A DNA stretch of 64,000 nucleotides, from NCBI GenBank assembly GCA_964270895.1, contig OZ185441.1; one strand, given 5' to 3'. The position numbers and the translations under genes were made by a program. The DNA comes from Podarcis filfolensis. Its lineage: Eukaryota. This document shows positions 20,101-54,200 of the stretch, one piece after another (the stretch's first letter is position 1; every line of letters begins with the position of its first letter). The notes under the pieces were generated by a model. The model ran no database searches and was not told where the DNA came from. It worked only from the letters and a program-made list of their open reading frames with translations.

Positions 20101-22460
20101 AAGGAATGGTTATTCCTTATCCCCACAGAATAGGACTATTTTATTGCAAGTGTCCTTTCCAACTCTACAATTCTATGATCACACTTTCAAGTACTGTTGC
20201 CAGTGAGGTCACTTATATTTGAAATACTGATTTGGCAAGCGGAGGTCTCATAGCAAGAAGGAGTGTGTGAAAAAGCTACATTTCCCTGTTATTAAATTTC
20301 CGCCTCCACTCAGTGCTGCAGTTAGGTAATTTTAGTTTCTGGTCTTTCTGGAGCCCCCTTTTTTAGATAGTTGTGTGTGTTGCTTCATAATGTGGTTGGG
20401 GTCCTCCTGTTCATTCTGCTGAGTGGGTCTCTGGACTTGTGCCTTAATGTCCTTTTCTGATGGCATCACTGCCATAACCAGTCACTCTCATTTCTGATGA
20501 TAGTGGTCCCTGGGGTCAGCTGCAGGCACCCTTTATAGGGTCCCACAGCCCTCCCACCTGGCCTGGCCAGGATTCAAATAAGGCTATGGCGGGAAAGCCC
20601 ACCAATCTCCAGCAGCTGGACTGGGATTCCTCATAACCAGCCACCTCATCCTAGTGTTCCTTCCAAGGGGGAGGAGCCCAGCATGATGGTTACTTGTGAC
20701 CAGGTAAGCAGCCATTTTCATTCATCGGCAGCATTTATACACATATGGACGAATGACCCAGATGGCAGAGCACAGTCCACATTCCAGTTCTCTCTACAGT
20801 ACATTTTACCCAAAGTTTCTCCTTTCTGTTTTTCATTGCAGCTGGAATTTCTAAACAAAGGTCATTCTGCTATAGCAGTAGCCTGTCAGATGCAAAGACT
20901 TTGGTAAGTAACACATACGTAATATAAAACCAACTACCTCTGTGCAACATCATGTGACTCCTGATGATTGCTACAAGTCCTGTGAGTGTTTCAGTCAAAA
21001 ATTCATGTAACATCCTTAATCTTCTTATAAAGAGGTCTTTGCACTTACATTAATCACATCCTCCTTCCGATACAAAAAAGATCAAAAGCAAAGGTTGCAA
21101 ACACACAAAAAACCCTGTAAAAACAAATCTAAAGAAATTATCGGACAACAACACAAGCATTAATTTTTTTTACATGATACATACAAATCCAGCAATTATA
21201 AGAAAGGATAGCAATATTAAGATGATACTGGCATTGGTGTATCAGATATAATCTTTTCTCAGCCTCCCAACACCACACTCTCTAGTCTCACTCTTTGTTG
21301 ATTGATTTTTAAAATTTATATCCTGCCCACTTTATAAAATAATCCAATTGGCTGACAGTATATCTATGAAAACTGTTATTTTATGGGTGAACAAACAGTC
21401 CAAGCATGAACTATTAGGGTCACCCACTGATGTCTGCCATGCATATATGATGTCAACATTCCCTCTTCTACCAAGTTGTTAGATGTGTGCTAGCTATTAT
21501 TGTGTTCTGTTTTTATTGCATCTTGACATTTTTATTTTACCCCCCCCCCACGCATTTCCCTATAATTTAGCAGCCGCAGGGATCCCCAGTCTCCCATCAC
21601 AATGCAAGATGGATTGCAGCCACAGAACCAGCCATGAGGGATAGTGCATTTGCAGACGAGTAAGTTTCTTTCCGTTACCCTCTCCTCTAATTCCACAACT
21701 ATTACTTGGGCTACCAAACTCAAAGTCTATAAGAACCAATGACACGCTACTCAGACTGAAGATCGCTGACATTCCAAAATGCAACTTTTAAGAAGTTAAA
21801 GAGTATCTGTAAATAAGTAAAAGCGGAAAGAGTCCAAAGGCTGCTGGAAGAGCATACTTTACATGCACAAGATCCCAAACATAATCCACAACATCCCATA
21901 CACGCTTACCTAGAAGGAAGTCCCATTGAATGCAATGGGATTTACTGCTGAGCAGGCACATATAGGATTGCACTGTTGTTTTCTATTTTCATTATATGTT
22001 TTTTATTCTGGTCCAGGATTAATTAATCTGCTGTGCTGGTTTTTAATGCTCAAATGCTATCATATGGTCTTCTTCTGCTTTGATGTTTCATATGTCTTTA
22101 AATTTAAGTGATCATTGCCTTGCAAGGACAATGGGTCCTGAAAGGCAGGGTGGAAAAGCATTAAATAAACAGCAGGCGTCTAAAGATTTTGCCTGAAATA
22201 TCAGGGTTTTCTGTACTATAAACTTTTTTTTTAAGGCAGTTTAATTGTCATGGCTTCTCCAAGGAACATTGGGAACTATAGTTTGGTGAAGGAATGTTGG
22301 GAACTATAGTTTGGTGAAGGTGCAGAGAATTCCATTAGAGCAGCTTTCCCCAACCTGGTGTCCTCTAGGTATCTTGGACTATAGCTCCCATCGGCCCCAT
22401 TTGGCATGGCCTTGCTGGCTGGGGCTGATAGAAGCTGTTGCCCAAAACATACATACATAC

Positions 22461-22513
<53 letters not shown>

Positions 22514-22852
22514 TTTTAACAAATAGTATTTTAACAATAGAAGACAAAAATGGTGGGGAAAAAAGTTTTAGTAAATCGTTTGACAAAACGGTGAACACCA
22601 AATAAATATTCTGAAGGAACTTAATCTTGAAATGTTGAATCTGTTCCCACTTTCAACTGTAGGCACAGAAGGTCCTTGCAGAAAAATACTGAAGATGACA
22701 TAAGCCCAACTCAAGGAACGGAGGAGGCCTCTTTACCTCTAACGGGCAGCATTTTGCATGGAACACCAAGCCTCCTGCGGAAAATATGGATGAAACATAA
22801 AAAGAAGTCGGAATATTTGGGGGCCACAAACAGTGCCTTTGAGGCAGACTGA
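11171..22852 (+). CDS. VXN: Vexin (C8orf46 homolog), six coding exons, 209 aa
   Basis: Exons 11171-11234, 14439-14494, 19434-19602, 20842-20903, 21571-21659, 22663-22852 (TGA); 630 nt, frame conserved, all GT-AG. The N-terminus MHQIYSCSDENLEVFTVISSK and C-terminus EASLPLTGSILHGTPSLLRKIWMKHKKKSEYLGATNSAFEAD* match vexin, and the position between ADHFE1 and MYBL1 is syntenic. Exon 5 (QPQGSPVSHHNARWIAATEPAMRDSAFAD) is the least conserved and was placed by splice sites and phase. Confidence 0.93.
16431..16752. repeat. 161-bp tandem duplication in VXN intron 2
   Basis: 16431-16591 and 16592-16752 are identical except for 3 transitions. Confidence 0.95.
16743..16877. mobile_element. hAT MITE (135 bp)
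   Basis: TIRs caggcttcctcaaactcggccctccagatgttt ... aaacatctggggggccgagtgtgaggaagcctg. The 8-bp TSD matches 7/8 (atttatta / agttatta). Confidence 0.9.
19801..19915 (+). mobile_element. L2 LINE 3' end with a duplicated tail
   Basis: gggagccacccagagtggctgggaaaacccggtcagatgggcagggggtataaat then (TTTA)n; gggcagggggtat plus (TTTA)n is repeated a second time. Confidence 0.7.
20150..20182 (+). mobile_element. CR1-type 3' tail fragment
   Basis: gtcctttccaactctacaattctatgatc resembles the CR1 terminal stem and ATTCTRTG repeat. Confidence 0.55.
21885..21976. mobile_element. Old short palindromic (hairpin) MITE-like repeat; relatives at about 4065-4190, 25265-25355, 28575-28650 and 61800-61955
   Basis: atcccatacacgcttacctagaaggaagtcccattgaatgcaatgggatttactgctgagcaggcacatataggattgca is an imperfect inverted repeat centred on cccattgaatgcaatggg. 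Confidence 0.6.
22338..22447. mobile_element. Degenerate hAT-MITE fragment truncated by an AC/TA microsatellite; related fragments at about 15955-16025, 23495-23545 and 59250-59355
   Basis: ccaacctggtgtcctctaggtatcttggactatagctcccatc...gctggctggggctgatagaagctgttgcccaaaacat resembles the interior of the 16743 element. Confidence 0.6.
22448..22510. repeat. (TACA)n/(TA)n microsatellite
   Basis: About 60 bp of alternating AT preceded by ATAC units. Confidence 0.95.
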
Positions 22853-35200: not shown

Positions 35201-36398
35201 CTCTTCTACCAATCTACCCAGGTTAGAGCTTTGCAGGAGTAATCCTACTGCAGCTTCCTAAAAGAAACAAAATACACATTGATTTCTTCTTCTTCTTAAT
35301 GCCCCTGACTGATAATATACTGGAAAGTTCTTAAGTGTCCTACCAAAATTAAGGCAGTGATTAGAGTCCCAAAGACTTCACAGGCTAGAAGCAGAATGGG
35401 GTTCAACTGGCAGGTTAGCTTTAGACTCATATTCAAGAAAGACTGAGGACTTGGTCAGGACTGCTGCTTCTATGGGGAAAGGATAATAAGGGGATGTAGT
35501 TCATCTCAAAAACTAGCAGAATGGACTGTGTATAAAAACACTGCATAAGGCTGAGGTTACAACAATGGAAAGGAGGAGCAAGGGTCAACAGTGCTTAAAG
35601 GTGTTGTCTCTGAGAAGTGGGTGTTATGATACTACTCCTTTCCTCTCTGCAAGCAAGAGCAAGCTTGTCCTGGCTTCCTCCTGAGTTTGTGTTGTTTTGC
35701 AAAGCAGCAGGAATATGCGAGCACTTGGTGAGATTGCAGCCTTAAGCTTTAAAATGAAAATAAATTAAAAAACAAACCCCCTTCCAAATTTACAAAAGCC
35801 TTCCTGCTCCCACATGCTGTACAATACATTCAACAATGGTCTCAGTTTGAGATTTCTGAATACTGATGCTTTATCCTAATAAAAATTAAATTCTTCCCTT
35901 TGTCTACTCTTATTAGAAGTACCATTCTCAAATAAATACATTTAACACTGTAGTTAATTTTGTGCAGCATACCTAGTTCTAGTAGTGCAACTTTCTATTC
36001 TTCCTTTAGTCTTTCTTTTGTGTTTATAAAAATTGCTACATAAGCAAATGCGTTTAAGCAAAAGCATTCTCAAGGAGTTGTGTAATGTTTTTTCTTTTAC
36101 AGAACACTGAGTACCTGTAAACCTACTCTACATTAAAAGCTTCTTAAGAACAAGAGAAATGTATAAAGAATTTTAAAAACGGCTTAAAAAAATATTCCTT
36201 TCACCATTTTCTTTAGAGTGGTCTTTTAAAAGACCAATTAAACTTGCTTTTAAAAAAGGTTTAAAAAAAGACTTAAGTTCTTCCTTATAATGCAGCTTCA
36301 ACTCAAAAAAGTATCCATACATACATTACTGGGGAAAAAATCTCAGTATAAAGTCTGTAGTATAAAGGAAAAAGGTAGATTGGTACATTTAGCGACCA

Positions 36399-39300
36399 TC
36401 ACAAGATCAGAGCCCTTGAAGTGCTGCCAGTAGCTGTATAGGTGCTCAGGTATCTTCTTGCTTGCTCAGTCATAATAAGCTGATCTTCAGTCTTCCCATA
36501 AACAACAGCTTCCCATTCACAATTGGCCTGCAACACATGGTCCAGGTAACAGTTACTTTCAAGTCACATCGAACTTTTTTGTTTATAAGCGAAATATGAA
36601 ATCCAATTGTGGCTGCCTCACAGGAAAAGTAACTTCTCCTGGCATGACAGAATTTCAGCTTCCTCTTCTCTTTCCTGCAGCCCCACCCCACCCCGAAAAT
36701 TTGCTCCATAGGGTTGGGGGACCCTCTGGAGAAGATATAGGGAGGGTATGGGGCACAAAGGGCAAGTCCATTTTATGACAGTGTCCTCACAACCAAACCT
36801 TAAAATAAAATGTATCATTTAACAATGAGAATTCAACATTTCTCAGTTTCACTAAGTGGCCCTAAGACATGATCCTATTCTCAGCCTCAGCCCCCTCATC
36901 TGGAATGTGGGAATAATCACACCAGCAGACTTTACAGTTCAATATAAACACATTACTCCAAATACAGAAAGATCTGTTTGATGGCACCAAGCTTTTTTGA
37001 AAAGTTTCTTTTTTACAAAATGGCACAAGCCTTTGTAGAAGCAACTCACTTCAGATGCTCAGCAGTTCCATGAAATAGGTTGTCACCTATGAAAGCTTAT
37101 GCTATTTTAAAATAAAAAGTTTTTAAATTGTCAGCCGCAAGGTGCTATTAAACAGATTCCTCTATTATTATTATTATTTTTAAAAAAAGGTTTCATACTA
37201 TATAAACAAACATTACTGAAAATGTCTGTGAACCACTTTTCACACTTGGCGCTCCAGCCAGGTGGAGGTACAACTGCCATCTCCAGAGGACTCTTATAAA
37301 GGGAGGCATTGAACACCAGTATCCATCTCCACTCTTTGTAATTTACTTATGCACTGGAGTCGAAGGGGAGGGCTGGATGTGAATATGGGAGGCATCTGAA
37401 TTACTCTTAACTGTCTTGCCCATGTTTTTCTGCAATGTGGTTCTAGTGCACCATTATCATTGCACTATGCGGGCTACTGAAACCTCAGCAGTACTGTTCC
37501 AAGTCTACACAGAGGGCATGGCACTAATATCAACATGGGTACTACTGGACTTAAAATGAAATCTTCATATTTGCATTGCATATTTCAATACCAATGCATC
37601 ATATTTCAGTACCAACGCATCATATTTGCATTGGTAAATATTGAATTTAGTCGTAATGGATGCATCGTGAGAATCTTGCAGAAAATAAGCTGCATCAAGA
37701 ACCCTCAATTCCTTATTTATATCTAAGCTGCTAAATACAAACAGAAAGGAAAGAATGCAAAAAGTAATCTTCCAAATAGCATATAGCTAAACTAAATAAA
37801 GCAGAATATTAAGATGCATTGAATACAGACCTGGAAGGTTTTTTCTGTTTTGACATTTTTTGAAGTGCAAGTATTCTGCTTTTTCTTCATTGCTACATTC
37901 AGCTTTGTTGAACTGGAATCCTGTTTCTCTGGAGTCCTACTGCCTCTATTGTCATGTATTTCCAATAATGGAATCATCAGGAGTGATGTAGTATATATAT
38001 TTTCTGACTAGATTTACAAAGGAAAAAAAAGTTTAAATCAAATAATTGAAGAATAAAAAACTGACATACAGAACTCTCCCCATTTACATTCAAAGGCATC
38101 ACGTGTTTAAGTGAAATTGTGGGCCACTTCTAAGTTCAGTGCAATATGTGCATTGCATGCATGGTCACATACTTATCAGACGTTCCTAAAACAATCACTG
38201 TAATGCAAACAATAAGGCCCAGTAGGTTCATCCCTATTTAGCAACCTTATAAAAGTGGCATACTTTGAAATAACCAGCATTTGGCGATATGACTTCAATA
38301 GGCTGTATCATCTTAATTCCAATAATTCTAGCTTGAAATATTTTATGGATCCAGATAAATGTGTTCTTGTATCACTAACACAAAGACCTTTCTAGAATAA
38401 AAGCGGCCTATAAATAATAATATTAAAAATGTTCCATTACAAAATGAGACAAGACTGCTGTTTTTCTTGCCATTTAAAATCTAAATTTGGTAGTATTATT
38501 TTTAAAGCCAGTGTCATGCTTGGTTGTGCTACTTGTCAACAGAGAAGATTTCAAATAACCATGACTTACAGAAACAAATTAAAACAAAAAAATTTTTTTC
38601 TTTCCAGTAGCACCTTAAAGACCAACTAAGTTAGTTCTTGGTATGAGCTTTTGTGTGCATGCACACTTCGTCAGATACACAGAAACAAATTAGTTTACAT
38701 TCTACCTTAAATATGTGCATATTTTAATTCATGCTGCTCACCTGTACATCTGGAACACTTTCATCTGTGAAAAACTGGGCACCAAGCTCTTCTTTTTCCC
38801 AAGGATCCAAAACTAATGACTTCCTGACTTTCTTCACAGAAGGATTCTAGGAGCAACATTTTAAAGAAAGAAAAGCAACTACAGTCGTTTCCATAATCCT
38901 TGCAATGCTAGAATACTATGTATTTTTAAATTGTTATACAGCTCCACATTTCACAGAAATCACTAAGCAGTTTACAAGTATCACAAGTAGATTAAAAAGT
39001 GAAAAATTCCACATTTTATAACAGCACAGAAATAAAACATTAATATTAAACCAAAATAAAATTAATGACTAATAGCAATTCCAAATTACAGAAATACAAT
39101 CGACAACTAGCCAAATATACAAGTATGTATTTACAGGTAGCAACAGCTCTCTCACTTCTGCTATCTCCCCAACCTAAGCTTGCAACATAAAGTGGGGCAA
39201 AATTACACACTCCCTGCCCCCATGCAAAATTACATACTTCTCTGCTCCCAATCATTTCTCCCTCCAATAATACCCATAAAAAACAACAAGGGTGGGTGGT

Positions 39301-42300
39301 GCCCTCACCCTCTTTGTAAAGGAGCTTTGAAAAAGGGTAATGTAATTTACCTCTAGTTTGCAGCCCTTGTAGAAAGAATCCTCTTCTTCCTTGAAGAAGA
39401 TATCTGTTCCAGTTTCCTCCTTTAAAACTTCTCTGATATCTTCTTCCAGATAGGCAAGGGGCTGTGACTAATCAAACAGGTAAAATACATCAAGCAGAAG
39501 GCAAGTCGGGAAATGATTTCTCCTAAATATCATAGCACTAGGTACACTACTTTAAAAAAAACATTTAATTCCAATGCACAAGTAATTCAACTGTAGTATT
39601 ATTTAATTTACGGAATATCCAGAAGCAATCCAGCACAACACTATGGAAAGAGATGAGGACATTAACAACCAATCAAACCATGCTTCTCTATATATCTATA
39701 TACTAGTACAAAGGATTACCATTAAACTTTCAAAAGAAGAAAAAACTGGTTTGAAGCAAAGTAACATTGCCTATCATAGCATAGTCTTATATTTAAATAG
39801 AAGTCCCACTCTAATAATGATGTGATTTCTTACACACCCTCCATTAGAGGAGTTACAGCAATTTAAAACTTAATATTTAAAACAGTTTAAAATCAATTAC
39901 ATTAAAAAATAGGTCCTGAGCTGTGTCTGTGTGTATGTGTATCCAAGGCAATGTGAACCAAAAGTTACGTAAAAGGAATATGAACCAAAATTCTACATAC
40001 CACAATTTTCAGAGGACCATATTTTTTTTCCTGAGCAGCTAAAGCATTCTTAAATGGAGTAGGGGTCCTTGGTGTTGTACCTAGCAGCGATCTTCTAATA
40101 GTAGGTGTCCTAAAACTTTCCAAAAACCGAAGTTATTTATGCAGTGTGTTACTATTTAGATAGTCAAAATCAGTCATTTTAAGTAAAGGATTCTTGGAGA
40201 GTGAATCCACTCCCCCACTTTCCTTTGATGGTATTTGCAAAGTAATTCTTCAGCACATCTAGGTTTTGTTTTGTTTTTAATTCATATCTAAAAGCCATTT
40301 AAAATGAATCATATACTTACCCTGCATTTTCTTTTTGATCTTTGGGTGTTACTTCTTTATTATGTAAAGGTGTGGTAATAAGAACCTTTTGGCCACAAAT
40401 TGGAGTTGATGTAAAGGCAGGATTTTCAATGTTAAACTGCTCATTTCCAGAACAGGTGTTGAAGAACTGCACATAAAACAAGAACACAAATTGTTCCATG
40501 TAGATTGAGCAGTATTCCCTCAAACTGTCTCCGACTACCAGTTGTGAATCTGCTTATACAGACTTAACTATTCTGGTTTTGCTTTTATTACTCTGCCCCA
40601 TACACACAGTTATGAGCTGTCCAACTTGTAGCAAGACATATTCTCATTCACTATCATGCTATTACGAAGATTTCATAAGCATGATTCTCTACCCTTAGGT
40701 CAGAGAAGAACAATGGGCTGTACCCAGGTATGTTTTACACCGTGTAGAACTATCACTGAATACAAGCCAATCAGTTAATATCAACAACATCATTAAATAA
40801 ATAAATAAATTTCTATACCACCCTTCATCTGAGGATCACATTGCTGTCTTTGCAACTAATTCAAACTACCGTATTTTTCGCTCTATAGGACACACTTTTC
40901 CCCGTCCAAAAATGAAGGGGAAATGTGTGTGTGTCCTTTGGAGCGAATGCAGGCTTTCGCTGAAGCCTGGAGAGCGAGAGGGGTCGGTGCGCACCGACCC
41001 CTCTTTCTCCAGGCTTCAGGAAGCTATCCGCAAGCCTTGCGAGCCTGGCGGGAGTTCCCGCTGGGCTCCCAAGGCTTGCAGATAGCAGCCTGCATCCCGA
41101 AGCCCAGGGAGTGCTGCACAGCGCACCCCGGGCTTCGGGCAGATATCCGCAAGCCTGGGGAGCCCAGCAGGAGTTCCCGCTGGGCTCAGAAGGCTTGCGG
41201 ATAGCAGCAAGCTCCAGGAGCAAAGGCGAAGTTGCGTGCAACCTCGCCCCCGCTCCTGGACCCGTTCGGGGGAAGCTCAGGCTTCCCCCGCCCCAGCCCT
41301 GCGGCTAAAAAGGAACCAAGATAGCGAGCGGGATCCATCCCACTCGCTGTCTTGGCTTCTGCCAAAGCCACACGCAGCCTCTCCCAGCTGGAGAGGTTGT
41401 GTGTGGCTAAAGAGGAAGCCAAGACAGCGAGTGGGATGGATCCCATTGGCTGTCTTGGCTTCTTTGCTCTTTGGGGCTGGGGGCAGGGGAATAATTTTTT
41501 TTCTTTATTCCCCCCCCCAAAAAAAAAACTAGGTGCGCCCTATAGAGCGAAAAATACAGTACCTTTCATTCTACTTTGACCTTTTGCTGAACTTTTGGAG
41601 TAATCATTGCAATATTTTCAGTGTTTTTCTGTAAAATTGTTGGCTTAAAGCTGTGTTGGATTTATGCCATTCAGATAACACTGGAAACAATACTAAATTG
41701 TATGCAAGTCATTTATAGAGCCAATTCCTGCCATGACACAATCCAAGATAGGTCTGAGTCACTTATAGTTAAAATGTGCAGAACCAATGTACTGAGCAGG
41801 GAAGAGCTGCATACTTAACTACACAATTGTTACAAGTGAATGAATAGTGTAACATCATCTTTTATTGATTTATAGGATTTAGTAGATAACCCTGCCTAAC
41901 CTATTCAATAAAAGCAAGTTTAATTACATCAATTTTATTTACCTGGGAAGGAGAAAAGGGTAGTGTTTTCACTGGTGTTTGTTTTAGTGCAAAATTGGAA
42001 CCACTGCTACATGAACCATCGTTCTGTTCATTGACTGATGGTGACAGTCCAGTTCTAGTTTTCTTCTTCTTGCGCAAAATAGTTGGAGGAGTACTGAACT
42101 TGGCTGTAGTTGGAGATGCTGACTCTTCGTCGTCACTTGATTTTTTGCCATCTAGTACAACACTTACATTAAACTGGCACTCCATGGCCCCATCGTTGTG
42201 CTGAATCCGCATTAGTTTTACTGGAGCTTGACTGACAGGGGACGTAGCCGCATCAGAGAGGTCAAAGCTGGTGACGTCACTCCATGCTACAGGATCCTAC

Positions 42301-45300
42301 AAGGGGGAGAAAGAAACATTGTGCCATGTGTTTATTGGAATAAACAGAATTATTTATCTCAACAGAATTGGACTGGTGGGATCAGTTGCTTAACTGTGCA
42401 CCATCATTCTAGCACAAAACGACTAAATTTAACTCTAGTCCTTAAGTGCATGTCTTTTTAGTTTGAATTCAGTCTCCTAATTTTCTATCATCTTATTCCA
42501 GAATGTTAATTCCTAATTCTGCATTGTTTTTCTTTACAAAAACCAATAAAGCAGCTAATAGTGAAACACTATTATTATGTAGCACTTGCAATACATAGAA
42601 CAAATGATATATTTTGTGCTAATGTTAATATTGTTTGTTTGTTTCTCTTTTGCATATTATGAAAAATAACTGTTTATTAAAGGCTGGAAATAAAATGATT
42701 CAGACTTACAGACTCAATGAGTTCTAGTGTCTCTGCAAATTCTGGAATGGTCTGTAGAGATGACAAAACCGCATTTGCCTCCACAGCCAAATATTTGGTA
42801 GGAGAGTTCTGCTGAGCTGTTGCAGTCTGGGTTTCATCCAGATTATAGAAGTCATTTGTTTGTTCCCCAAGGCCATTTAGGGCATTTGTCATACTATCTT
42901 CCATGATGAAGCCTCCAGACCAGTTAGAAAAATTTCCAGCTTGCTAAGAATACAAAAAGTGTTGCTTTTTATTGATATTAAACATGAAAGATGACTAACA
43001 TAAATTACTTTTAGGCAACCTAGGTCCCACCTGCACTATTCACTTAAAGTAGTATCACCTCAGTTTAAACAGTCATTGCATCACCCAAAGAATCCTGGGA
43101 GCTGTAGTTTGTTTGTTTTTTAGTGTTGGGAGAATGGTTGGGAGACCCCAATTCCCCTCTCAGAACTACTATTCCCAGAGTTCCGTGGGAAGAAGGTCTG
43201 ATAATTACCTTATTTTTCGCCCCATAGGACGCACCGCCCCATAGGACGCACCTAGTTTTTTGGGGGGGAAATAAAGAAAAAACATTTTATTTCCCCCCAG
43301 ACGCGGGGCTGGCGCGGGGGAAGCCCGAGCTTCCCCAGCCCCCAGAACAGGCTGCTGCCTGCAAGCCTTGCGAGCCCGGTGCGCGAGGCTTGCCGACATC
43401 TGCCCAAAGCACGGGGCTGGCTCCTCAGCTCACCCCGTGCTTCGGGCTGCAGGCTGCCGGCCCAAGCCTTGCGCGCCCGGTGGGACCTCCCGCCGGGCGC
43501 GCAAGGCTTGCGGACATCTGCCCGAAGCACGGGGCGGGCTCCGCAGCTCACCCCGTACTTCGGGATGCAGGCTGCCGGCCCAAGCCTTGCGCACCTGGCG
43601 GGACCTCCCGCTGGGCGCGCAAGGCTTGCCGACGTCTGCCCGAAGCACGGGGCTGGCTCCGCAGCTCGCCCCGTGCTTCGGGCTGCAGGCTGCCATCCCA
43701 AGCCTTGCGCGCCCGGCGGGACCTCCCGCCGGGCGCGCAAGGCTTGCGGATAGCTTCCTAAAGCCTGGAGAGCGAGAGGGGTCGGTGCGCACCAACGCCT
43801 CTCGCTCTCCAGGCTTCAGCGAAAGCCTGCATTCGCCCCATAGGACGCACACACATTTCCCCTTCATTTTTGGAGGGGGAAAAGTGCGTCCTATAGGGCG
43901 AAAAATACGATAAACAACACTGATTAGCATTTAGGCTATAGTTCAAGCATGCTGGGATTCTAAGGGAAACACATTCCATATGCAAAGAAAGAGCCAATGG
44001 CAGAAATAGCACAGAAGCTACTGTTGTGCATGCAGCTCCCTTCCTGCAACATTTCCTTTGCCCTCCATAATTTAGCAATGAAAGGTATGCAAAGCACCAA
44101 GCCTTTCTTCTAAAAACTCTAAGATAGTTGTCCTAAGAAGCACATTATGTCATTCAAGCTGTCTCAACTGCCCCTCCCTCTTGTCCCACTGTCCCAGTGT
44201 GCAGGGAAAACCAACAGGATTCCCTCAAGGATTCCTGTATAAGCAAAGGAGAATGGGGAAGCAGAATACACATGAAACAAATCAGAATCATAAAGCTCGT
44301 TCATTAATTTGTTTAAAATATGAACAGTAAAAGATCATTAGCCATCATGACATCATGACATTTATAGAAAAAGTTCTTACAGATGAGACTCTCTTTCTCC
44401 TGATTTCATTCTCAGCCGACATAAGTAACAGCTCAAGTTCCTTAATTTTTTTCTCTTTGTCAGGATCATCATCAAATGGCTGCTGATGCATACATTGAAG
44501 GAAAAATAACAACACCAAAGGACAAAGTGTTAGGGCACATTACTGAGAATGGCAACATATTTGCTGTTATAATTTTCTGCAAACTCAATTAAACTTATCA
44601 AAGTTCTCATTCAAAACATGGGTTGCCAACACAGAGCCCACAGGTTCACATGCATCCAGAGGCCTTCCCTGGTGCCCATAAGGTCCACCCCCACTGTCCC
44701 TCCTGACTGCTTTTCAAGATTAGTTGCAACATAGGAGAAATTCTGAAGGGTCACAGGCTCACAGCTGCAGATCATTATTCTGCCACCCCATGCCAAAAGG
44801 ATTCCTCACAATACAAGTGGTCTTCAAAGAAGCCCTCTGTTGGCTACAGTAGGTTTCGGAAGCTTAATTTACAATGGAGGAGAGGTGATTGTGGGTTGCA
44901 GCTAGGGAGGAAAGGATTGTTGTTTTCCTGCCCAGCTGCAACTCTCCAAAGTTGCAAGACCTGAGCGCAGAAGCACTCTCCCCTCCAGCGGTTTCCAGCA
45001 ACTGGTATTCAGAATAGTTTATTTTAAACTGCAGTATTGTTTAATACGATGTGCTAGCCAGGCCACTGTAGGCCACACAATCTCTATCTCCCCACCCCCA
45101 AAGAAAAGGGGGAACACCTTATAACCTTTGAAACTAATCTTATAGACACATTTTTCGCCTGCACAGAATTCTTCTCAAAATGCTCTCCTAGAGGTCACAT
45201 TATATACAAGCCATTATTCATTTTAACGGATCTGTTGCTCAACACAATCCTGGTGATAAAGTCCTTAAACTAAAACATTTGCATGCTATCTGCCAAATAT

Positions 45301-48300
45301 TTTCATAAAAAGCTTAAAAATTCATCATTATAGATAGAACTTACCTGAATGAAATTTGAAGAAGTTGTGACATGGTCAATGCAGTTGCCTTCTGTTGAAA
45401 CATACTGATATCCTGGGATCTAACAAATCAGAACTATTCTTTATATACTGATTTTATACACTTTATACACATTTTTCAATTTCAGCAATTTTATAAAATT
45501 TGACACATACTTCTTTTCAAAAACTGATTAATTTGAGACAAATGAGGAACTCTCAGGTTATTAAAGAAAATTTATCCACCGTATCACTTTCATTACAATA
45601 TCCATTTATCACACTTTTAATTTATCACAGTATCACTTGGAGACAAGAGCTCATTTTCCGAGTTAAAAAAAGGCTTATTGAGGCGGTAAACATTGGATTT
45701 TTAAATAAAAATTCTGAAGATATTTCCTCAACAACATTTTTTTTTAACAGCAATAGTTTCTTTGTGATATAAGTTTTAACAGAGTGAGCAACCTTGGTAG
45801 GGTTGGCAAGATGCAATGCACATGCTCTTAGATGGAACTGAGTATCCTGACACGTCTCAGTCTAAATTAGCTGCCTACTAGCTTTCAATGTTTCACTGTT
45901 GATATTTAAAGCCCTAACCAACTTGGGACCAGGATACATACTGTAGCAGACAGCCTCCCTTGGCATAAACCAAGCCCGTCTTTTTTGTAAACCGCCTTAA
46001 TGTTTTTTTCCACAATCAAGCAGTATATTAATTTTATGAAATAAATATATTTCTAAGTTTTCACAAGGAGAAATGGGCCTTCTCAGCAACAGCACACACC
46101 TCAGGAATATCCTCCTTTGGGCCATTCATGAGGCAAAGACAGTAATAACTTTTAAATACCTCTTAAGAACTAACATTTACTCAAATTTCCTGGACTCCAA
46201 CTAACTCCCCAACCTCTGTTTTGTACCCTGCCCAATTTGTAATACATAGTTTGTTATTCTTCATCTATTTTTGGAAACATTACTCAGTGTCATTTATTAT
46301 GATGGTTCTTACACAAACCACTTCAATTTTTATTATATCCATCAGTATTCATCCATCACTATGCATTTTTAATAAATAAATGAAACAGAAAACGTCTATA
46401 CCAGAAAAAGAGGGAATTTCAGTGGATTAGCTTGTCATGCCAGCTTCATCTAGTGAAATCCCTTGCTTTACATAACTATGAAAGGTACAGGAGCATTGCC
46501 TTATTTTTCACCTGGCTAGCCATAGCGCTCAGCCAAATTTCTAAAGTCCTTTGCAGAAGACTAATCTCTTCAAAGACCAAGAATGAAGAGAGAGCAGAAG
46601 AGGAGGTGTAGAGGGGGATGTGAAAAGAGAAAGGGCTGCTGGGAGAAATAAAAACAGCATCCCCATCTCCAACACCACTGGAGAGAATGTAGCCCTTGAT
46701 AGAAAAAAGTACTCATCCATTTTAGTATATGCTTCCCCCGCCCTTCTTAAATAAAAAATGTAGACACACACAAAAGGTTCTGAAAAACTTACATGTGCCT
46801 GCACTGGTATGTAGAACTGATTTGGGGTATGAAGATGGTCTGTAGATGCACAAGTTTTGTGTGGCAGTTTTGACGAACAAGGTCGCTCAGTCTTGATTCC
46901 ATCTTGTAAATATCCTTCTTGTTCTACTTTTCTTCGCATAGTGGAGTTCCAATGATTTTTGATAGAATTGTCAGTCCTAAATAAATCATGGGACAGATCA
47001 GGCCAAAGTCAAGCAATATAAAGTCTCATGTATTCAATGGATGAGAGTTAATCACCTGCTTAACTCTTATTGAAATGAATTAAAACATAAATAATATTTA
47101 ACTTTGGCTGCATTGTGCCCAAAATGTAGAAATTATGTAGTTACATATTGCATTGACCTGAGAGCTTAGCTACATCAAGATAGAAACAATGAGAGAAATA
47201 ATGTCTTGAGAAGGAAAGTTACCTTTCGATACTTCTCTAAATTAAAAAGGGGAATTTCAAATATTTCTAAAACAGTACAATATTTATTTTTCATAATAAT
47301 AGAAAGGGACGGGAGATCTAAGAGGATTCTTCCTAACAGAAACTTGCACAAGTAGAATTTAAAAATGTTTCTCTTCCTCCTTTGGATTCCACCCAAGTAT
47401 TAGTTTCTTTGTTATTGGAATCATAGCCGTCTGGAGGAAGGAATCTGTATTACTTTAACTGCTCCGAATATAACATTAACAACTATTTGATTCAGATTTT
47501 AAAATAACTCAAAATGCAAGATAAATTGCAGAGCAGAAAAGAGGAAAGGTATGCTATATGATAAGCAGGACATTTGTAATTATTTAATCAACAAATCCTG
47601 CAAAATCCACCGCAAGATAATCCATTTCTTGGATATTTCTTCCTAGTTCACCCTTTAGAAATAAACTTTTACACTATCAATTCCTTCTATTCTGATTCTG
47701 GGGAGCAAGTACACAGCTTAGCTCTGTAACATTCTTGGCATGGCAGGGGTTGATGGGAGAGGGGAAAATAGATGTTGCAATATCAAGCAACATCGTGGGT
47801 GCTTGAAGAAACTAAAGGAGTTCAGAAGATTGCTGCCTGGTTACTTGAGCCAGAAGGCCACAGGGCATCTAATATACCAAACTCCCTTCTTCCCTTTTCT
47901 AAGCCTCAGTGGTTACTGGTTGATGTAATCATGCCTGCCCAGAAACACATGCAAGGAAGGACCGCGCTCCTACAAACATACACACACACACACACACACC
48001 CCAAACTTGTGCTGCTCTACAAGTTTAAGAGAAATCTATGGAGATCAGTTGGGGACACTGGATGCTTAGCAGGATTGGCCAGGCAGAGGGATATTTATTG
48101 CTATGGCGCAGCCTACTGCACAAAAACATTAAGACATGGCATAGAGAAGGGTGGAGCTTCTTTGAACATGCTAATCTGGGAGTGGGGGGAGGCCAGTCCC
48201 AATTATTTTGGAATAGGTTTCAGAAACCTAGAAATAACAGTGTGATTTTACCTTCCGGGAAGCAACTTCGCAATTTCAGCCCATCGATTTCCCAAGCGTT

Positions 48301-51253
48301 TGTGAGCTTCATAGATGATTCTGTCCTCCTCCTCAGTCCATGAAGATTTCTTTACCTCAGGATTAAGGTGATTATGCCATCGTTCTCGACATTGCTTCCC
48401 TATTCTTCCTTTTAAGTGCTTTGCAATCAAAGACCAGCGCTTTGGACCATATTTCTGAACAAGCTCAATAACCTGCAACACAAATTGAACAGCAACAGTA
48501 TGCAACTGATTACTATATAAGAAAACAATAGCCATATTCATGATAAAGAATTAGAGAATCTCAATTACATTTATTTATGCTATTTGTACTTGGAAAAAAA
48601 TAGTAATACTGAAGTAGTACAAGATTGTGTCAAGCAAAATGATAAACAGTTATATTTCAAAAGTTCCAAAAGACAGAGTGACATTGACTTTTTAAATAAA
48701 AATTGTACAGCATCCAACCAATGAGAAAGAAAATGCATTTTGGAAAACAGTCTGAAATATATCACTCTTCCTTTCCACATACTGTGTGGCCAAGTACAGG
48801 GTGAAATGAGAAAGCTTTTAACATGTAAGAAAAACAAACCAATTGTTACATTTTAACACATCATAGTTAAATACATGACAGTGTTGTGAAAAACTGATAG
48901 CATTATCCTATGAGAAATGAAATCAATTTGGGAAAATATTCAAGCAATTTAATTTATATTTTGGTTTTCATCCAAGTAAACTCTTAAGAGCACAACAATG
49001 GGACTGTGAACCCCATCCTACAATTGAGTTGGCCAAAGGGTAAAAGCAGTAAGGTAAAAGCAGGGTAGTGCACTCTTGGGCAATCCTACTGTGCTTTCAG
49101 AAACATAATTAATAATCAAGAAAAATATAGATCACTTACCCTCTGATCCTCTTCCTTAGTCCAGGGGCCTTTAATAAGTTCTGGATTCAGGACTTTTTGC
49201 CAACGGTGCTGGCACTGAAAATCAGAACGATTCTGCAGAAGAATGGGGGGGGGGGGGGGAAATCACTGTATAATTCCAACTGAAGACTCCATAAGGCTCC
49301 AATATACACCTGGAGCTTCCATTAGGAGCATTGTTGTTGACTTCAGTGTGGGAGACATCTTGGCACATGCAATGGAGATGCATGTGTGGCTTTTGAACTC
49401 TTGTATGTAAAATAAGAAAAATCTCATTGAAATAATTTCTACTTACTTGTAGATGACTAGCAATAAATGTCCAGTCACTTGTACCATGCTGTTCTACTAG
49501 CTTCTTCAGCTTTTCATCCTGTTAATACAGTTTTTAAAAACTTATAAATAGACACATGACATTAGATCTAAACATAAAGAAAAGCCATTACCTGGTTAAG
49601 GCTCACCTCATCACGCGTCCATTTTACTCTGTTACATAACTTCTTCGTTCCTTTTTGTTGTGGTACTTCATAGTCATGATCTGCATAGTGAAGGTCATCA
49701 TCATCTTCCTCACTGCAAAGTGCAAGCTAATATTAAGTTAACATTGACAGTGAAACCATGCTTACACAACAGCTCGAGAAATCTTTTTTAAAAAATAACA
49801 AATCATCAACAGAAGGCCCAATTCCAATTGTGGAACAGTAGCATGAGGGAAGGACAGTTTTCCTTCATCGTTTTCCCATTGACACCCCCTGCACTGCTTT
49901 CAGTTAAGAAAAAGATGTAGGGCATCCAAGCAAAAGATTCAAATATTCCATTTAGGCAGGATCCAATACGGTCCTGAGATTAATGTCCTGGGTTTCTCAA
50001 CTTAGTATCATTTGTTTTATATAAGGTCTGTCTTGTTGAAGAAGGGTGACTGCAAAAGAACTTGTTAAATTTTTATTGGAAAACCACAAACATAACTAAA
50101 GAAGTGTCCAGATTGCATTAAAGGTGGCCCTGTCTATAGGGAAACACACCATACATTTTTTCTATGTTAAATTTATTTCTATACAAGAATGCTGTCAGCA
50201 AATAGCATTAAGCTGGGAACTCATGATGAAATAAAAGAAATAGGAAGAAGATTGTCATCACCCTTGTACCTCCTTGATGCCTGTGCGCCATCTACTGGAC
50301 AAAAAAACTAATTTCAAAACTATTGGGTGTTTACATCAAAAAATTTATTTGTCCATATTTGTATCACCCTTCCTTCCAAAAAGAGGGTATAACAATTAAA
50401 GAACAGGAAAAAACCCACTGGCTTCTCACATCCATCCCCTTTACAATATCTATTTGTGACACAATATTAATATATGTAAATGCCCTTTTTTGACAAACAT
50501 GTTTCAGCAGCTGTTTCCCTTCAGCCTTTCTAATATATGTGCAGAAATAAATATTTTCAAATTTCCAATACATGTGAGGTGTAAGGTTACCAAAGAGCTA
50601 TGCTTTTTAAATTACAGACAACAAGTGTACTACTGGTACATGATAGTCCCTGGATAGCTGGCGGGTTTGGTGGCTCTGGATACTTTAAAGCCAGTCTAGA
50701 CAGATATATGTGCACACATGCATGTGTACAGGATTGGGGTAAAAGCAGACACTGAGGAACAGAGAGAAGGGGGTTTACAACTCTATTGGGATAATAAAAA
50801 GCAACACTATCTCTGAAGCATACTCTTTCCACATTTCCTCTGCCTTCATCTAACTTAGGCTTTGAGTGTTTATGGAGACAAACACCTGTAGTTTATCGGT
50901 TGCTTAACCCATGATGTAATCATGAATGTCAGCATAACTCTCAGTCACCAAAGGGTTTCCTTTTCTACATTGCTGGATGCCTTCCTTGGTGTGACACTTG
51001 TTAGAGAATCCACACAAGAGGAAGTGAAGCAACTGTTCCTAAATAGTATTGAAGAAATCCTATTCTTCCTAAAGATACTTCCTTGTAAGGAATGCACTGA
51101 TTTCCCTAGTGTAGAAAACAGTAACACTACTTTGAGGAAGCTGGTACTAGTGCCATGATGCAAAGTCACAAACCACTGTATAAAATCAAGTGAGACAAAT
51201 AAGTTATCCCATGTAAACTTTTTAGGAACAATGTTCCCATGTACTGTAATATA

Positions 51254-51290
<37 letters not shown>

Positions 51291-53505
51291 ATGCATACAT
51301 TCCTCATACACAACAGTCTTCTTTTTCTGAGGCCCTTATGAGATATGCTTAGTTTCCTATGTGTATATGATGAGCATGTACATGAGATGCCCACATCAAC
51401 TGACTTCTCTCAAGATGCAATTCTTCAGGGAACTTAGCTCAGCTAGTATTTCTTTCTTTACTGTAGAAAGCAGTCACACTGTTTTAAATTCTCTTTCTTC
51501 ATTGACAGTATTCCCATTCTCATTCAGTATTCTCATTCACAGTATTTCCAAGTTAAACACAGAATATGATTTGCAAACAAGTTCTAAACAGTGGGTTGTA
51601 TTCAACAGAGCGCTAAACAAAATGTTACATCAACACAAAATAATTTTTCCTTGCACAACACAATGTTCTCCCCCACTCCTCCCCATGTGCCCTCTCAAAT
51701 ATGTTTGCTGGTGGTGAGTTCCTCCAGAGCAGATTTGGGGGTGGTGTGGAGTGCACATAGGGAGAGGAAAAGGGGTGAAATCTCACTGCAAAAGCACAAC
51801 TATTTAGTTGAATGCTACCCCATGGTTTCAACATTAAAAACAAACCTTAGAAAGAACATTACTGCTCTGCTTTGTAAAGGGGTATGGCAGGGTTGAGCCT
51901 TGCACATACAGTAATAAATCTTATGTTATATATATTGAAAGCTAGGAGACGATTCAGATGTTTAGGATAGCAGTTGGGCAGTTCTTGATGCTTCATTTGT
52001 CTTGTTTTTCTGCTAAAAAAATAAAAGTTTTGACAAAACAAAGAACAAGAAATACTGCTTAACACTACATTTGAACCAGGCCATGATATCCCATTTTAAG
52101 CCATGTTCACATTCAAAAAGTCATCCACATTAGACTTAGTCTGTCCATTTTTACTTGGACATAAGTCCCACTGATTTCGAAAGTGGCTTACTTCCAAATA
52201 ATTGGGCATAAGATAGCTGGCTAGCATTTCTAGAGTTGCAAATAAAACTAATAAACATAGAATTAAAATTGAGCCCACAAGTGTGTGCATGTGAACACAT
52301 GAGAGAAAAGTAACAGACGGCCAATTCAGACTAAACTAAAAAAAAATCCAGTTTCAATTATTTTTAATATTCTAGTGGAAGTAAAAAGGCAGTTTTATGA
52401 ATGTCAAAGTCATTAGCACACTACCCAAACTGCATTTGTTAGACCCACTGTTAACTTTAATCTGATAGATAAGTAATTCCACAATAGTTCTTCCTCTAAC
52501 CTGGATACCTAGTTTGATACTGTACATAAACTATCTACACCAGAATGAAATTATTACACATTCTTGTTTTGAGATCTGTATGTTAATTCTATGATCACAC
52601 AGGGTGTAAATTTCGGAGTGATTTGTTCTAGAAATATGAAAAAAAAGTTTGTATGAGAATAAAACACACTGTACATGTCTTTATATGCAGGCAACACTCT
52701 CTCTTTTAAAGTCCTTAAGGTCAACATGGACATTGCTTTCCTCCCCGTTGCAGTACCCCCCAAAAACAACAATTAGCTTTCTACCTTGCCTTCCCAAGGA
52801 AGAAAACACAGTGCCATGTCTTATTTAGTAACAGCTGTACAATCTACTATTCTCATACAGAGGAAGGATAAAAAAAGAAGAAGCCACTATATCGACACTA
52901 CAGTAAATAAGCAACAGAGGGAAATACCAGGATAAGAGGACATGAATTACCAATATGAAAGGCTCTTTTGTCACTGTTATGTGACTCGATGCCAAAACAC
53001 AAAAACAAAGAAAGTAGGGTGGAGCCCAGAGGGCAATATAAATTTCCAAAGGGGAAGAAATCCGAGTGTCGAAATAGTGCTGTAGCTGGGGAGAACCAAG
53101 TGAAAGGATTACTACTGAATACCCTAGAATCAAGCGAAAAGATTACCACTGAATACGCAAGATTCTGTGTCCCCTTGTGCTCTGTGAATAATATTAATGA
53201 TGTCGGGGGGGGCACCTTAATTGGCATTAGCAAGATGCACTCAGGTCGAGGCGCTGGGGCGCAAGAGTGAATGGACCAAAGGACCCGATGGTCAGGGCAC
53301 GTGGAAACGGCAGCGAGGATCTCCTGAGGCGAGGGGATCTGTGGAGACGGCCGGAGGGCTGTCAGGAGCCCCCTGTTCCAGCGGATAGGCAGGGCTCAGG
53401 TTCCCCAAAGGTCCCGGGCAGCAGGCAGGGCGCTGGAGATGGCTTGGGGAGGGGGCGATCGGGAGGGTCTGCGGGGGCCACTCACCTGCGCGGCCTCTTC
53501 GCCAT
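36399..53505 (-). CDS. MYBL1: Myb-related protein A (A-MYB), 16 coding exons, 749 aa
   Basis: Exons (minus strand, in transcript order): 53505-53486, 49712-49607, 49518-49447, 49232-49140, 48472-48252, 46976-46793, 45419-45345, 44482-44381, 42943-42710, 42296-41943, 40466-40321, 40115-40001, 39467-39351, 38846-38742, 38007-37831, 36527-36399 (TGA); 2250 nt, all [32 protein letters not shown], then R1R2R3 Myb repeats ([83 protein letters not shown]), the activation motif [18 protein letters not shown], the conserved [23 protein letters not shown] region, and the end [20 protein letters not shown]. Confidence 0.99.
37566..37632. repeat. Short 21-bp-period minisatellite in MYBL1 intron 15
   Basis: catatttcaataccaatgcat / catatttcagtaccaacgcat / catatttgcatt, starting at 37579, 37600 and 37621. 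Confidence 0.75.
40869..41559 (+). mobile_element. Tc1/mariner Tc2-like non-autonomous element (691 bp), copy A, in MYBL1 intron 10
   Basis: TA|CCGTATTTTTCGCTCTATAGG ... CCTATAGAGCGAAAAATACAG|TA. GC-rich interior made of palindromic modules. The strand label only marks orientation relative to copy B. Confidence 0.9.
43083..43205. mobile_element. Older squamate repeat fragment directly abutting MITE copy B (probably interrupted by it); relatives at about 22260-22335 and 62560-62640
   Basis: ccaaagaatcctgggagctgtagtttg...ggagaccccaattcccctctcagaactactattcccagagttcc; the family was recognised from recurrence in this window and from memory. Confidence 0.55.
43208..43910 (-). mobile_element. Tc1/mariner Tc2-like non-autonomous element (703 bp), copy B, in MYBL1 intron 8; inverted relative to copy A
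   Basis: TA|CCTTATTTTTCGCCCCATAGGACGCAC ... GTGCGTCCTATAGGGCGAAAAATACGA|TA. The reverse complement of its right end aligns with the left end of copy A. Contains 118-bp internal tandem units. Confidence 0.92.
45880..46040 (+). mobile_element. Heavily deleted L2 LINE 3' fragment
   Basis: tttaaagccctaaccaacttgggaccaggatac ([11 protein letters not shown], an L2 ORF2 C-terminal motif) followed by gtaaaccgcctta...ttttatgaaataaata tail. Confidence 0.55.
47979..48000. repeat. (CA)n microsatellite
   Basis: About 10 CA units. Confidence 0.9.
51256..51287. repeat. (CA)n microsatellite
   Basis: About 16 CA units in MYBL1 intron 1. Confidence 0.95.
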
Positions 53506-54200
53506 CCTTGGCGCGCACCATAAGGAAGACGAGAAGAAGGGAGCGCGGCTGTCACCACCGGCCAAGGCGCGCAGCCCCCAGGGGGCGGGGAGGGGGGCGC
53601 GGCTGCCTTTCAGCCCCGGCCGCGCCTCGCCCCCCGCATGGGGGACATGGCCTTACGCCCAGCGAAAGGGATGGCAAGCCGGGCTCCAAGTCCCCCGCCT
53701 GGGGCCTCGCTCGGCTGTCACGGCTCGGAGCTCCTCCGGCAGGGCTGCTTTCCCCCAGGCGCCGCCGCCGCCTCCACCCCCGCTGGCTCCTTTTTCTCCT
53801 TTTTTTTGTCCCTGCCGCCGAATCTCGCGCCCAGCCTCTTTCCAGAGCCGCCGTTTGAATCTGCGCACGCGGACTGCTACGCCATTGGCTGCTCCAGAAA
53901 GCACGCGACCAAGCAAGGGGGCTGGTGCGAGGGAGGAGGGGGAACGGCCAGTAAGGGGAGAAAGGTGGCGGGATATGGAAAGGAGCCGGAGGAGGGGCCG
54001 AGGGCGGGCTAAGGCGCAAGGCATGCTGGGGGAGGGAGTCCTTTCGCCTTCAAGGGCTTGTGAGGGGATAAAACAACCGAAACAAAAACGGCCCGTTTTT
54101 AAGGGCAGTAGCCAAAGGCAGCTCACGGACGGGCAAAATACCCTCTGCGATATGTACTGAGTCAGCCTGTTGTGCCGCTTTCCTTTCCCCACACGTTAAA
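53230..54200 (-). promoter_or_regulatory. CpG island with MYBL1 promoter, 5'UTR and exon 1
   Basis: Abrupt rise in GC and CpG content around the ATG. CCAAT box at 53884-53888, CHR TTTGAA at 53854-53859, E2F-like TCTCGCGCCC at 53823-53832, NRF1-like TGCGCACGCG at 53862-53871, AP-1 TGAGTCA at 54158-54164. Confidence 0.85.

Follow-up and report, generated by a model that had tools for sequence, protein, structure and literature searches.

Inverted repeats in flanking introns, for example Alu/SINE pairs, promote exon circularisation. A 64-kb stretch of DNA from the wall lizard Podarcis filfolensis, referred to here as the window, raises the question of whether a pair of short DNA transposon derivatives (MITEs) could have the same effect. 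The two copies, A and B, lie in opposite orientation in introns 10 and 8 of a minus-strand Myb gene and bracket exons 9 and 10. The gene reads as A-MYB (MYBL1), which acts as master regulator of male meiosis and of the pachytene piRNA genes. An earlier note on this DNA had regarded the pair as a candidate switch for back-splicing or exon skipping.

The gene and the bracketed exons

The tentative assignment to A-MYB is based on sequence comparison. Long stretches of the gene agree with human A-MYB. Successive minus-strand exons match the Pfam families Myb_DNA-binding (2.7e-27), LMSTEN (2.4e-19) and Cmyb_C (3e-21), in the expected order. The peptide of exon 8 aligns with the KIX-binding peptides of c-Myb (6dmx and 1sb0), and its motif reads LMSAEN where c-Myb has LMSTEN. 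Exons 9 and 10 alone gave no Pfam match, and the identity of the gene is taken from the other exons. A homolog search with the open reading frame of exon 10 returned fragments only, with identities of at most 80% and no close lacertid among them. The exons concerned are:

44381..44479, minus strand: exon 8, with the LMSTEN/KIX-binding activation motif; phase 0 end at 44381
42710..42943, minus strand: exon 9, 234 nt, phase 0-0; the peptide ends in the FAETL motif; RNA contig pieces at 42709-42943
41943..42296, minus strand: exon 10, 354 nt, phase 0-0; contains RKKKK; RNA contig pieces at 41943-42295
40321..40466, minus strand: exon 11, start of the Cmyb_C conserved region; phase 0 start at 40466
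40001..40115, minus strand: exon 12, Cmyb_C, TPTPF region

Exons 9 and 10 are open in translation from their first base, and spliced RNA contigs place their boundaries to within one base, which bears out the lengths and phases given earlier. The donor and acceptor sites involved are close to consensus, and the flanking introns are short, at about 1.4 kb. Skipping of exons 9-10 would remove FAETL and RKKKK together with the start of the negative regulatory region. The earlier note had correctly named the loss of RKKKK, which lies in exon 10, but had overlooked that of FAETL at the end of exon 9.

Anatomy and age of the MITE copies

The two elements and their internal repeats are located as follows:

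40869..41559, plus strand: MITE copy A, 691 bp, in intron 10 of the minus-strand gene; GC 0.59, CpG observed/expected 0.59; TA duplications at 40867-8 and 41560-1; terminal inverted repeats present
41009-41208: two related 119-bp units inside copy A
43208..43910, minus strand: MITE copy B, 703 bp, in intron 8, opposite to A; GC 0.66, CpG observed/expected 0.85; TA duplications at 43206-7 and 43911-2; terminal inverted repeats present
43374..43747: 118-bp GC-rich palindromic tandem array inside copy B; 3.2 units, 90% matches

Both are short, non-coding and very abundant non-autonomous DNA transposon copies. A 2-bp TA flanks each copy on both sides, and no 3-bp target duplication fits either of them. 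The terminal inverted repeats span 38 nt at 82% in copy A and 30 nt at 90% in copy B. A 20-nt pattern of the terminal repeat, for which chance would predict 0.02 matches in the 64-kb window, has four, one at each element end. Because of the TA duplications and the terminal inverted repeats of roughly 27 nt, the family is assigned to the Tc1/mariner type; the Tc2-like affinity named in the earlier note would be a narrower, putative placement. A Pfam search of the open reading frames inside A and B found no family match and thus no coding capacity, and no transposase is present within the window. At the element ends, the summed contig depth in two DNA runs exceeds that of unique sequence by a factor of 10^3 to 10^4, a depth figure that is not a copy number. 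The window contains no N runs. A known RNA gene carried by the elements was considered and rejected, as Rfam gave only sub-threshold hairpin-like matches.

The longest inverted repeat between the copies has its arms at 40867-41009 and 43770-43912, an ungapped 143 nt with 92% complementarity. When A (plus) is aligned with B (minus), identity is 91% over 228 nt and falls to 74% across the adjoining 105 nt. At the far ends it is again 74%, and the interiors are unrelated (39%). The 91% identity over 228 nt shows that the estimate made earlier by eye, about 200 nt at the outer ends with roughly 90% complementarity, was right. The coordinates and opposite orientation first proposed for the copies are likewise confirmed by TA duplications, terminal repeats and inverted arms, and the distances stand at 383 nt from the exon 10 donor to A and 264 nt from B to the exon 9 acceptor.

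The CpG observed/expected ratios of 0.59 (A) and 0.85 (B) compare with 0.07-0.13 in the remaining intron sequence. The higher values in the elements indicate that the insertions are much younger than the introns in which they reside.

Occurrence in related genomes

In two relatives with a divergence of about 2%, DNA contigs run 24-26 nt into the element ends at 41534, 43885/43887 and 43231. The A/B pair is probably common to the window species and these relatives, i.e., to at least three related genomes. As it is probably shared in this way, the pair would not be the novelty of a single species. Under neutral drift, the pair would be expected to persist over a divergence of about 2%.

Among the contigs of distant squamates covered, only L001 and L002 reach exon 11. 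In the outgroup contig, exons 10 and 11 are about 500 nt apart, and the terminal-repeat pattern has no match. Since the outgroup introns do not align, this points to a short, element-free intron and not to an exact empty site.

Predicted pairing across the introns and self-folding

Folding of the full 3.2-kb region on the pre-mRNA strand, which the earlier note had called for, gave a minimum energy of -1582.0 kcal/mol with 353 A-B pairs, including a helix of 254 pairs. The arms of this helix are:

40869..41143, minus strand: predicted cross-intron duplex arm in copy A, 254 pairs with 43635-43910
43635..43910, minus strand: predicted cross-intron duplex arm in copy B, partner 40869-41143

With A-B pairing forbidden, the same pre-mRNA reached -1478.0 kcal/mol, which is 104 kcal/mol worse. 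An RNAcofold-type calculation for A and B together, of the kind with which dimers of young transposons were assessed in mammals (Gruhl et al. 2021, PMC8516420), gave -1145.3 kcal/mol and 327 cross pairs. In these models, pairing of A with B across the introns is thermodynamically favoured at equilibrium. Liang and Wilusz are said to have found in 2014 that 30-40 nt of complementarity are sufficient in minigenes; the predicted A-B duplex is far longer and lies near both splice sites. Besides A/B, no other inverted repeats of at least 40 nt were found in 36000-54000, which covers 18 kb of the gene. As modelled, the pair has the structure that circularisation by inverted repeats, a known mechanism, calls for. 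Given the long duplex near both splice sites and the lack of an outside competing partner, measurable circRNA from exons 9-10 is quite possible.

Self-folding, already raised as a caveat in the earlier note, proved to be a serious competitor. Each copy alone folds to a very low energy (A, -495.9 kcal/mol; B, -529.3 kcal/mol), equivalent to -0.72 and -0.75 kcal/mol per nt; the hairpins inside the elements have arms of 31-76 nt. In the local-only fold each duplex arm is self-paired to 84-85%, and the longest unpaired stretches, which could serve as toeholds, measure 5-8 nt. Furthermore, the order of transcription is unfavourable, as the modules that pair best are transcribed first in B but last in A. 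Normal inclusion of the two exons is expected because of the strong self-folds, the unfavourable transcription order and the strong-looking splice sites.

The preferred explanation proposes that introns 8 and 10 of A-MYB each received, in separate events, a copy of a GC-rich, palindrome-filled MITE family. The opposite orientation of the two would be due to chance, and both insertions probably reached fixation before the lineage separated from the relatives about 2% diverged. In the pre-mRNA, A and B could form a near-continuous duplex of roughly 275 nt that loops out exons 9-10, a geometry known to favour back-splicing, but each copy would snap into its own very stable fold during transcription. 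Exons 9 and 10 would be included in nearly all transcripts, with at most low-level circRNA or a skipped by-product and no regulated switch. A probability of about 0.62 is assigned to this reading of a young MITE pair in chance orientation, with normal exon inclusion and at most a low-level by-product; its folding kinetics, neutrality and by-product level are what we infer.

Transcripts and alternative explanations

In spliced RNA contigs from two related lizards, exons 8-9-10-11(-12) follow one another in the normal order; one of these contigs is 6637 nt long with a depth of 81. Exons 9 and 10 are thus normally included in the available assembled transcripts. No skip or back-splice pieces occur among the matches listed, which comprise assembled contigs only, and these drop rare variants. 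At 42004 and 42174 the organisms that supplied the RNA do not match the window, and the elements may or may not be present in them. A circRNA or exon-skipping effect of the pair would be a fairly ordinary possibility.

Sequences of the element family are abundant in the RNA contigs. This could be consistent with a purely local effect, in which the GC-rich hairpins of each element become substrates for ADAR editing or for dicing into small RNAs while exon choice is unaffected. The self-folding energies per nt and the long hairpin arms given above would suit such a fate, as would the Rfam matches to miRNA-precursor models, all of which are consistent with generic hairpins. However, all Rfam matches lie far below the gathering scores, and the RNA depth over the elements stems from copies across the whole genome. 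Such a local effect is considered improbable.

A working isoform switch, as envisaged in the earlier note, would require A-B pairing to yield meaningful testis levels of a 588-nt circMYBL1(9,10) and/or of an in-frame A-MYB lacking 196 aa. The geometry is in its favour: the copies are inverted, their 143-nt arms are 92% complementary, a 254-pair helix is predicted, and the cross-intron fold is 104 kcal/mol ahead of local folding. Both exons are in phase 0, the gene has no competing inverted repeats elsewhere, and the pair was probably kept in at least three related genomes. In addition, human MYBL1 makes a circRNA, circ-MYBL1, in T and NK cells, though from other exons, 12-7 (PMC6144802). These points are opposed by the assembled transcripts of two organisms, which show only canonical inclusion, by the strong self-folding and unfavourable transcription order, and by the strong splice sites. 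Neutral drift also predicts the retention over about 2% divergence, and mammalian circRNA loci follow the occurrence of young transposon dimers that themselves show no sign of being selected (Gruhl et al. 2021, PMC8516420). Taken together, a working switch appears very unlikely. Even less credence is given to its extended form, according to which the DNA-transposon MITE pair of wall lizards made a lineage-restricted circMYBL1(9,10) and/or an A-MYB without the FAETL-to-RKKKK segment, with testis-specific output that tunes A-MYB.

Least likely is an effect at the level of DNA or chromatin, with copy B acting as a CpG-island-like promoter, enhancer or methylation target or the pair mediating an inversion of exons 9-10 by recombination: the composition of copy B (703 bp, GC 66%, CpG observed/expected 0.85) and the inverted homologous segments of 230-340 bp, 2.3-2.8 kb apart, would fit, but a young insertion simply explains the high CpG, and the A-to-B joints listed among the contigs derive from other copies of the family. 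Neither a transcript start nor an inversion junction appeared in the contigs, a type of data in which neither would show up.

Comparison with known systems

Like Alu/SINE pairs, copies A and B belong to a young, abundant repeat family and lie in opposite orientation in the introns flanking internal exons. They differ in being derivatives of a cut-and-paste DNA transposon, in a reptile and not a mammal, and the circRNA at the lizard locus is predicted only from structure. Each MITE copy is a stack of palindromes, and its self-folding is therefore a much stronger competitor than that of Alu. The locus is mainly of value for testing whether MITEs that fold strongly on themselves can act like Alu pairs; it is now a well-formed candidate with the geometry needed by a known mechanism. 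If there is measurable diversion to the circle or the short protein, this would be a clean natural non-mammalian case of DNA-transposon-driven back-splicing. It would affect a gene in control of male meiosis, and the relatives would offer a comparison. Since the MITE family is so abundant in the genome, many such inverted pairs must exist.

A survey of rice counted only 72 circRNAs out of 2354 with MITEs in both flanks, and its authors took other mechanisms to be dominant (Lu et al. 2015, PMC4647462). As in the lizard, MITEs in both flanks were considered there as drivers of intron pairing; the organism and the element family differ. Human circ-MYBL1 comes from the same parental gene family member and shows that back-splicing of MYBL1 pre-mRNA is possible. 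It involves other exons in another species, with flanking repeats of other origin, and is uninformative on lizard exons 9-10.

With regard to the elements themselves, the TA duplication and the terminal repeats of about 27-38 nt resemble those of Tc1/mariner MITEs such as the Stowaway, Made1/mir-548-type and pogo/Tc2-derived elements. Further shared features are a length under 800 bp, the lack of an open reading frame with a family match and a very high copy number. The lizard copies are distinguished from these MITEs by interiors made of amplified 118/119-bp GC-rich palindromic units, which differ between A and B.

Host gene and position of the two elements

A vertebrate Myb gene lies on the minus strand of the window; its successive exons match the Pfam families Myb_DNA-binding (2.7e-27), LMSTEN (2.4e-19) and, across two exons, Cmyb_C (~3e-21). 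The exon 8 peptide aligns to solved c-Myb peptides that bind KIX, with LMSAEN in place of LMSTEN. This residue pattern and long stretches of other exons appear to agree with human A-MYB, and the gene is read as a putative MYBL1 (A-MYB). A GC-rich block (63%) at 53000-54200 contains a putative first coding exon, with a peptide ending in …MAKRPRR near 53485, and presumably represents the CpG island of the MYBL1 promoter.

Exons 9 and 10 of the putative MYBL1 gene and the flanking elements
43208-43910: copy B, non-autonomous transposon in intron 8, TA on both sides
42710-42943: exon 9, minus strand, 78 codons, open from the first base
41943-42296: exon 10, minus strand, 118 codons, open from the first base
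40869-41559: copy A, non-autonomous transposon in intron 10, TA on both sides

The earlier note had delimited both elements exactly, each of which has a TA dinucleotide on either side, and its distances to the splice sites are reproduced: 264 nt separate copy B from the exon 9 acceptor downstream of it, and 383 nt separate the exon 10 donor from copy A, which follows it. Lengths are 1437, 413 and 1476 nt for introns 8, 9 and 10, so that each element occupies roughly half of its host intron. The end of exon 8 (44381) and the start of exon 11 (40466) both fall between codons, so that skipping of exons 9 and 10 would preserve the reading frame and delete 196 residues, as proposed. The RKKKK stretch would be lost from this hypothetical protein, as had been recognised, but so would the overlooked FAETL motif at the end of the exon 9 peptide. 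In Myb proteins, the negative regulatory domain begins at FAETL (PMC7910556).

Anatomy, age and abundance

A 20-nt pattern built from the terminal sequences has four matches in the 64-kb window, compared with 0.02 expected matches, one at each element end. Terminal inverted repeats of 30-38 nt (I18, I24) bound both copies, and no Pfam match was found for the ORFs inside them. The interiors consist of nested GC-rich palindromes, with 3.2 repeats of a 118-bp unit in copy B, and, in copy A, two related 119-bp units together with a hairpin whose arms are 76 nt long. The window contains no N runs. The copies are in opposite orientation. Alignment of the plus strand of A with the minus strand of B gives 91% identity in the first 228 nt and 74% over the following 105 nt, while the interiors are unrelated and the far ends are 74% identical. 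The longest inverted repeat of the region pairs 40867-41009 with 43770-43912 (143 nt, 92%). Together with the alignment, this bears out a by-eye estimate of about 200 nt at roughly 90% complementarity.

The CpG observed/expected ratio is 0.59 in copy A and 0.85 in copy B, compared with 0.07-0.13 in the remainder of both introns, which indicates that the insertions are much younger than the surrounding intron. Copy A is the more decayed; copy B (703 bp, GC 66%) fits the usual CpG-island criteria, the ratio in the rest of its intron being 0.07. In contig L001, from a distant squamate whose exons are ~80-89% identical, exons 10 and 11 are separated by only ~500 nt and the terminal-repeat pattern has no match, which points to an insertion in the lineage of the window.

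DNA-run contigs of two relatives, organisms F and G, were placed on 39600-45400. Both share about half of the sampled 31-letter words, corresponding to ~2% divergence from the window. Their contigs of unique flanking sequence extend 24-26 nt into the element ends. The stop points are 41534 at the right end of copy A (F), 43887 and 43885 at the right end of copy B (F and G), and 43231 at its left end (G). Such overlaps fall short of the 31-letter bridging rule but are expected for 31-mer contigs reaching a high-copy repeat. Since an empty site would give a flank-to-flank contig, these ends are read as occupied: both relatives probably carry copy B, and at least one of them copy A. At copy A, the organism G contig ends at 41560 and has 56 letters left unplaced. 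When contig depth is summed over the element ends, it exceeds that of unique sequence by a factor of 10^3 to 10^4; this figure does not give a copy number, but it indicates that the family is very abundant.

Predicted pairing of the copies in pre-mRNA

Predicted folding energies (pre-mRNA strand)
Copy A alone: -495.9 kcal/mol
Copy B alone: -529.3 kcal/mol
A + B cofold: -1145.3 kcal/mol, 327 intermolecular pairs
Whole 3201-nt stretch (44000>40800): -1582.0 kcal/mol, 353 A-B pairs
Same stretch, spans >1640 nt forbidden (no A-B pairs possible): -1478.0 kcal/mol

The proposed cross-intron pairing is predicted by the whole-stretch fold, and at equilibrium the modelled structure is favoured by ~104 kcal/mol over the local-only fold. 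It includes a 254-pair helix of 43910-43635 with 40869-41143, from which exons 9 and 10 are looped out. No other competing inverted repeat of at least 40 nt was found in 36000-54000. Jointly, the two insertions form a textbook geometry for repeat-mediated circularisation.

Three features argue against efficient pairing in vivo. The caveat that each element can fold on itself holds, as both arms are 84-85% paired in the local-only fold and the longest open runs are just 5-8 nt. The transcription order is unfavourable: polymerase moves towards lower coordinates, so the best-pairing module of copy B is made first and has an element-long interval in which to self-fold, and its partner in copy A is transcribed last, ~2.1 kb beyond the exon 9 acceptor. 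With co-transcriptional splicing, intron 8 may be gone by then. Lastly, the splice sites look strong, with donors GTAAGA, GTAAGT and GTAAAT and pyrimidine-rich acceptors.

Transcript evidence

Assembled Logan contigs from two RNA-like runs of related lizards (RNA organisms A and B) were placed on the same 39600-45400 stretch; the runs are spliced and hence genuine cDNA. Contig X2 (6637 nt, depth 81) aligns in pieces at 44381-44479, 42709-42943, 41943-42295, 40321-40466 and 40001-40115, and contig X1 (806 nt) has identical joins for exons 8 to 11. Both confirm the exon model and a dominant mRNA that includes exons 9 and 10. RNA depth at 45226-45400 is probably exon 7. Among the matches listed for contigs of both organisms, none represents an exon 8-exon 11 skip or an exon 10-exon 9 back-splice; assembled contigs lose rare variants, so this result speaks for constitutive inclusion and not against a minor product. 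In exon 10, both RNA organisms depart from the window sequence at 42004 and 42174, differences lacking in F and G, which places them in another lineage than the window and F/G. Their transcripts may stem from genes without the two elements. At 42195 (exon 10), the window alone has G and all four runs have A, a synonymous difference in an Asn codon.

Interpretation

Copies A and B are most likely two independent intronic insertions of an abundant MITE, probably neutral, with canonical splicing as the dominant outcome. Low levels of a circRNA or of a skipped by-product are plausible, and by our estimate the chance that such a product is detectable in deep testis total RNA is somewhat short of even. 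A regulated switch is very unlikely.

Inverted Alu or other SINE pairs act by the established mechanism that is proposed here. In contrast to them, the present repeats are DNA-transposon MITEs with extreme self-complementarity, situated in short introns of a different host lineage. If a product exists, the locus would be a further case of known repeat-mediated circularisation, differing in repeat type, short introns and host lineage. Mammalian circRNA loci track young transposon dimers that are without signs of selection (PMC8516420), and in rice only 72 of 2354 circRNAs have MITEs on both sides (PMC4647462). A human MYBL1 circRNA occurs in T and NK cells (PMC6144802), with exons 12-7 back-spliced, whereas the candidate here comprises exons 9-10. 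No lizard circRNA survey was among the best 8 of 99 matches of a literature text search (circRNA + lizard).

The insertions may have other effects. Each element may be edited, or processed as a local hairpin, for which an Rfam scan gave sub-threshold hairpin-like matches only; copy B, being CpG-rich, may act on chromatin; and the inverted copies may recombine.

Neighbouring repeats

A SINE-like fragment (43040-43200, motif 'ctgtagtt…ctactattcccagagtt') lies immediately upstream of copy B as read on the plus strand; DNA-run depth rises at least 100-fold there and the relatives' contigs break at 43111-43113. Just before copy A, 40800-40840 is a short piece of a different dispersed repeat. A number of RNA and DNA contigs align as far as 40840 and run on into unrelated sequence, and both relatives' contigs stop at 40827-40829; copy A may therefore have landed beside or inside this older repeat. 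Intron 7 contains another high-copy repeat (44838-45031), with depth ~50-fold up in both DNA runs. The simple dinucleotide repeats at 22280-22520 and 51200-51260, translated as (IY)n and (CV)n, are ordinary microsatellites.
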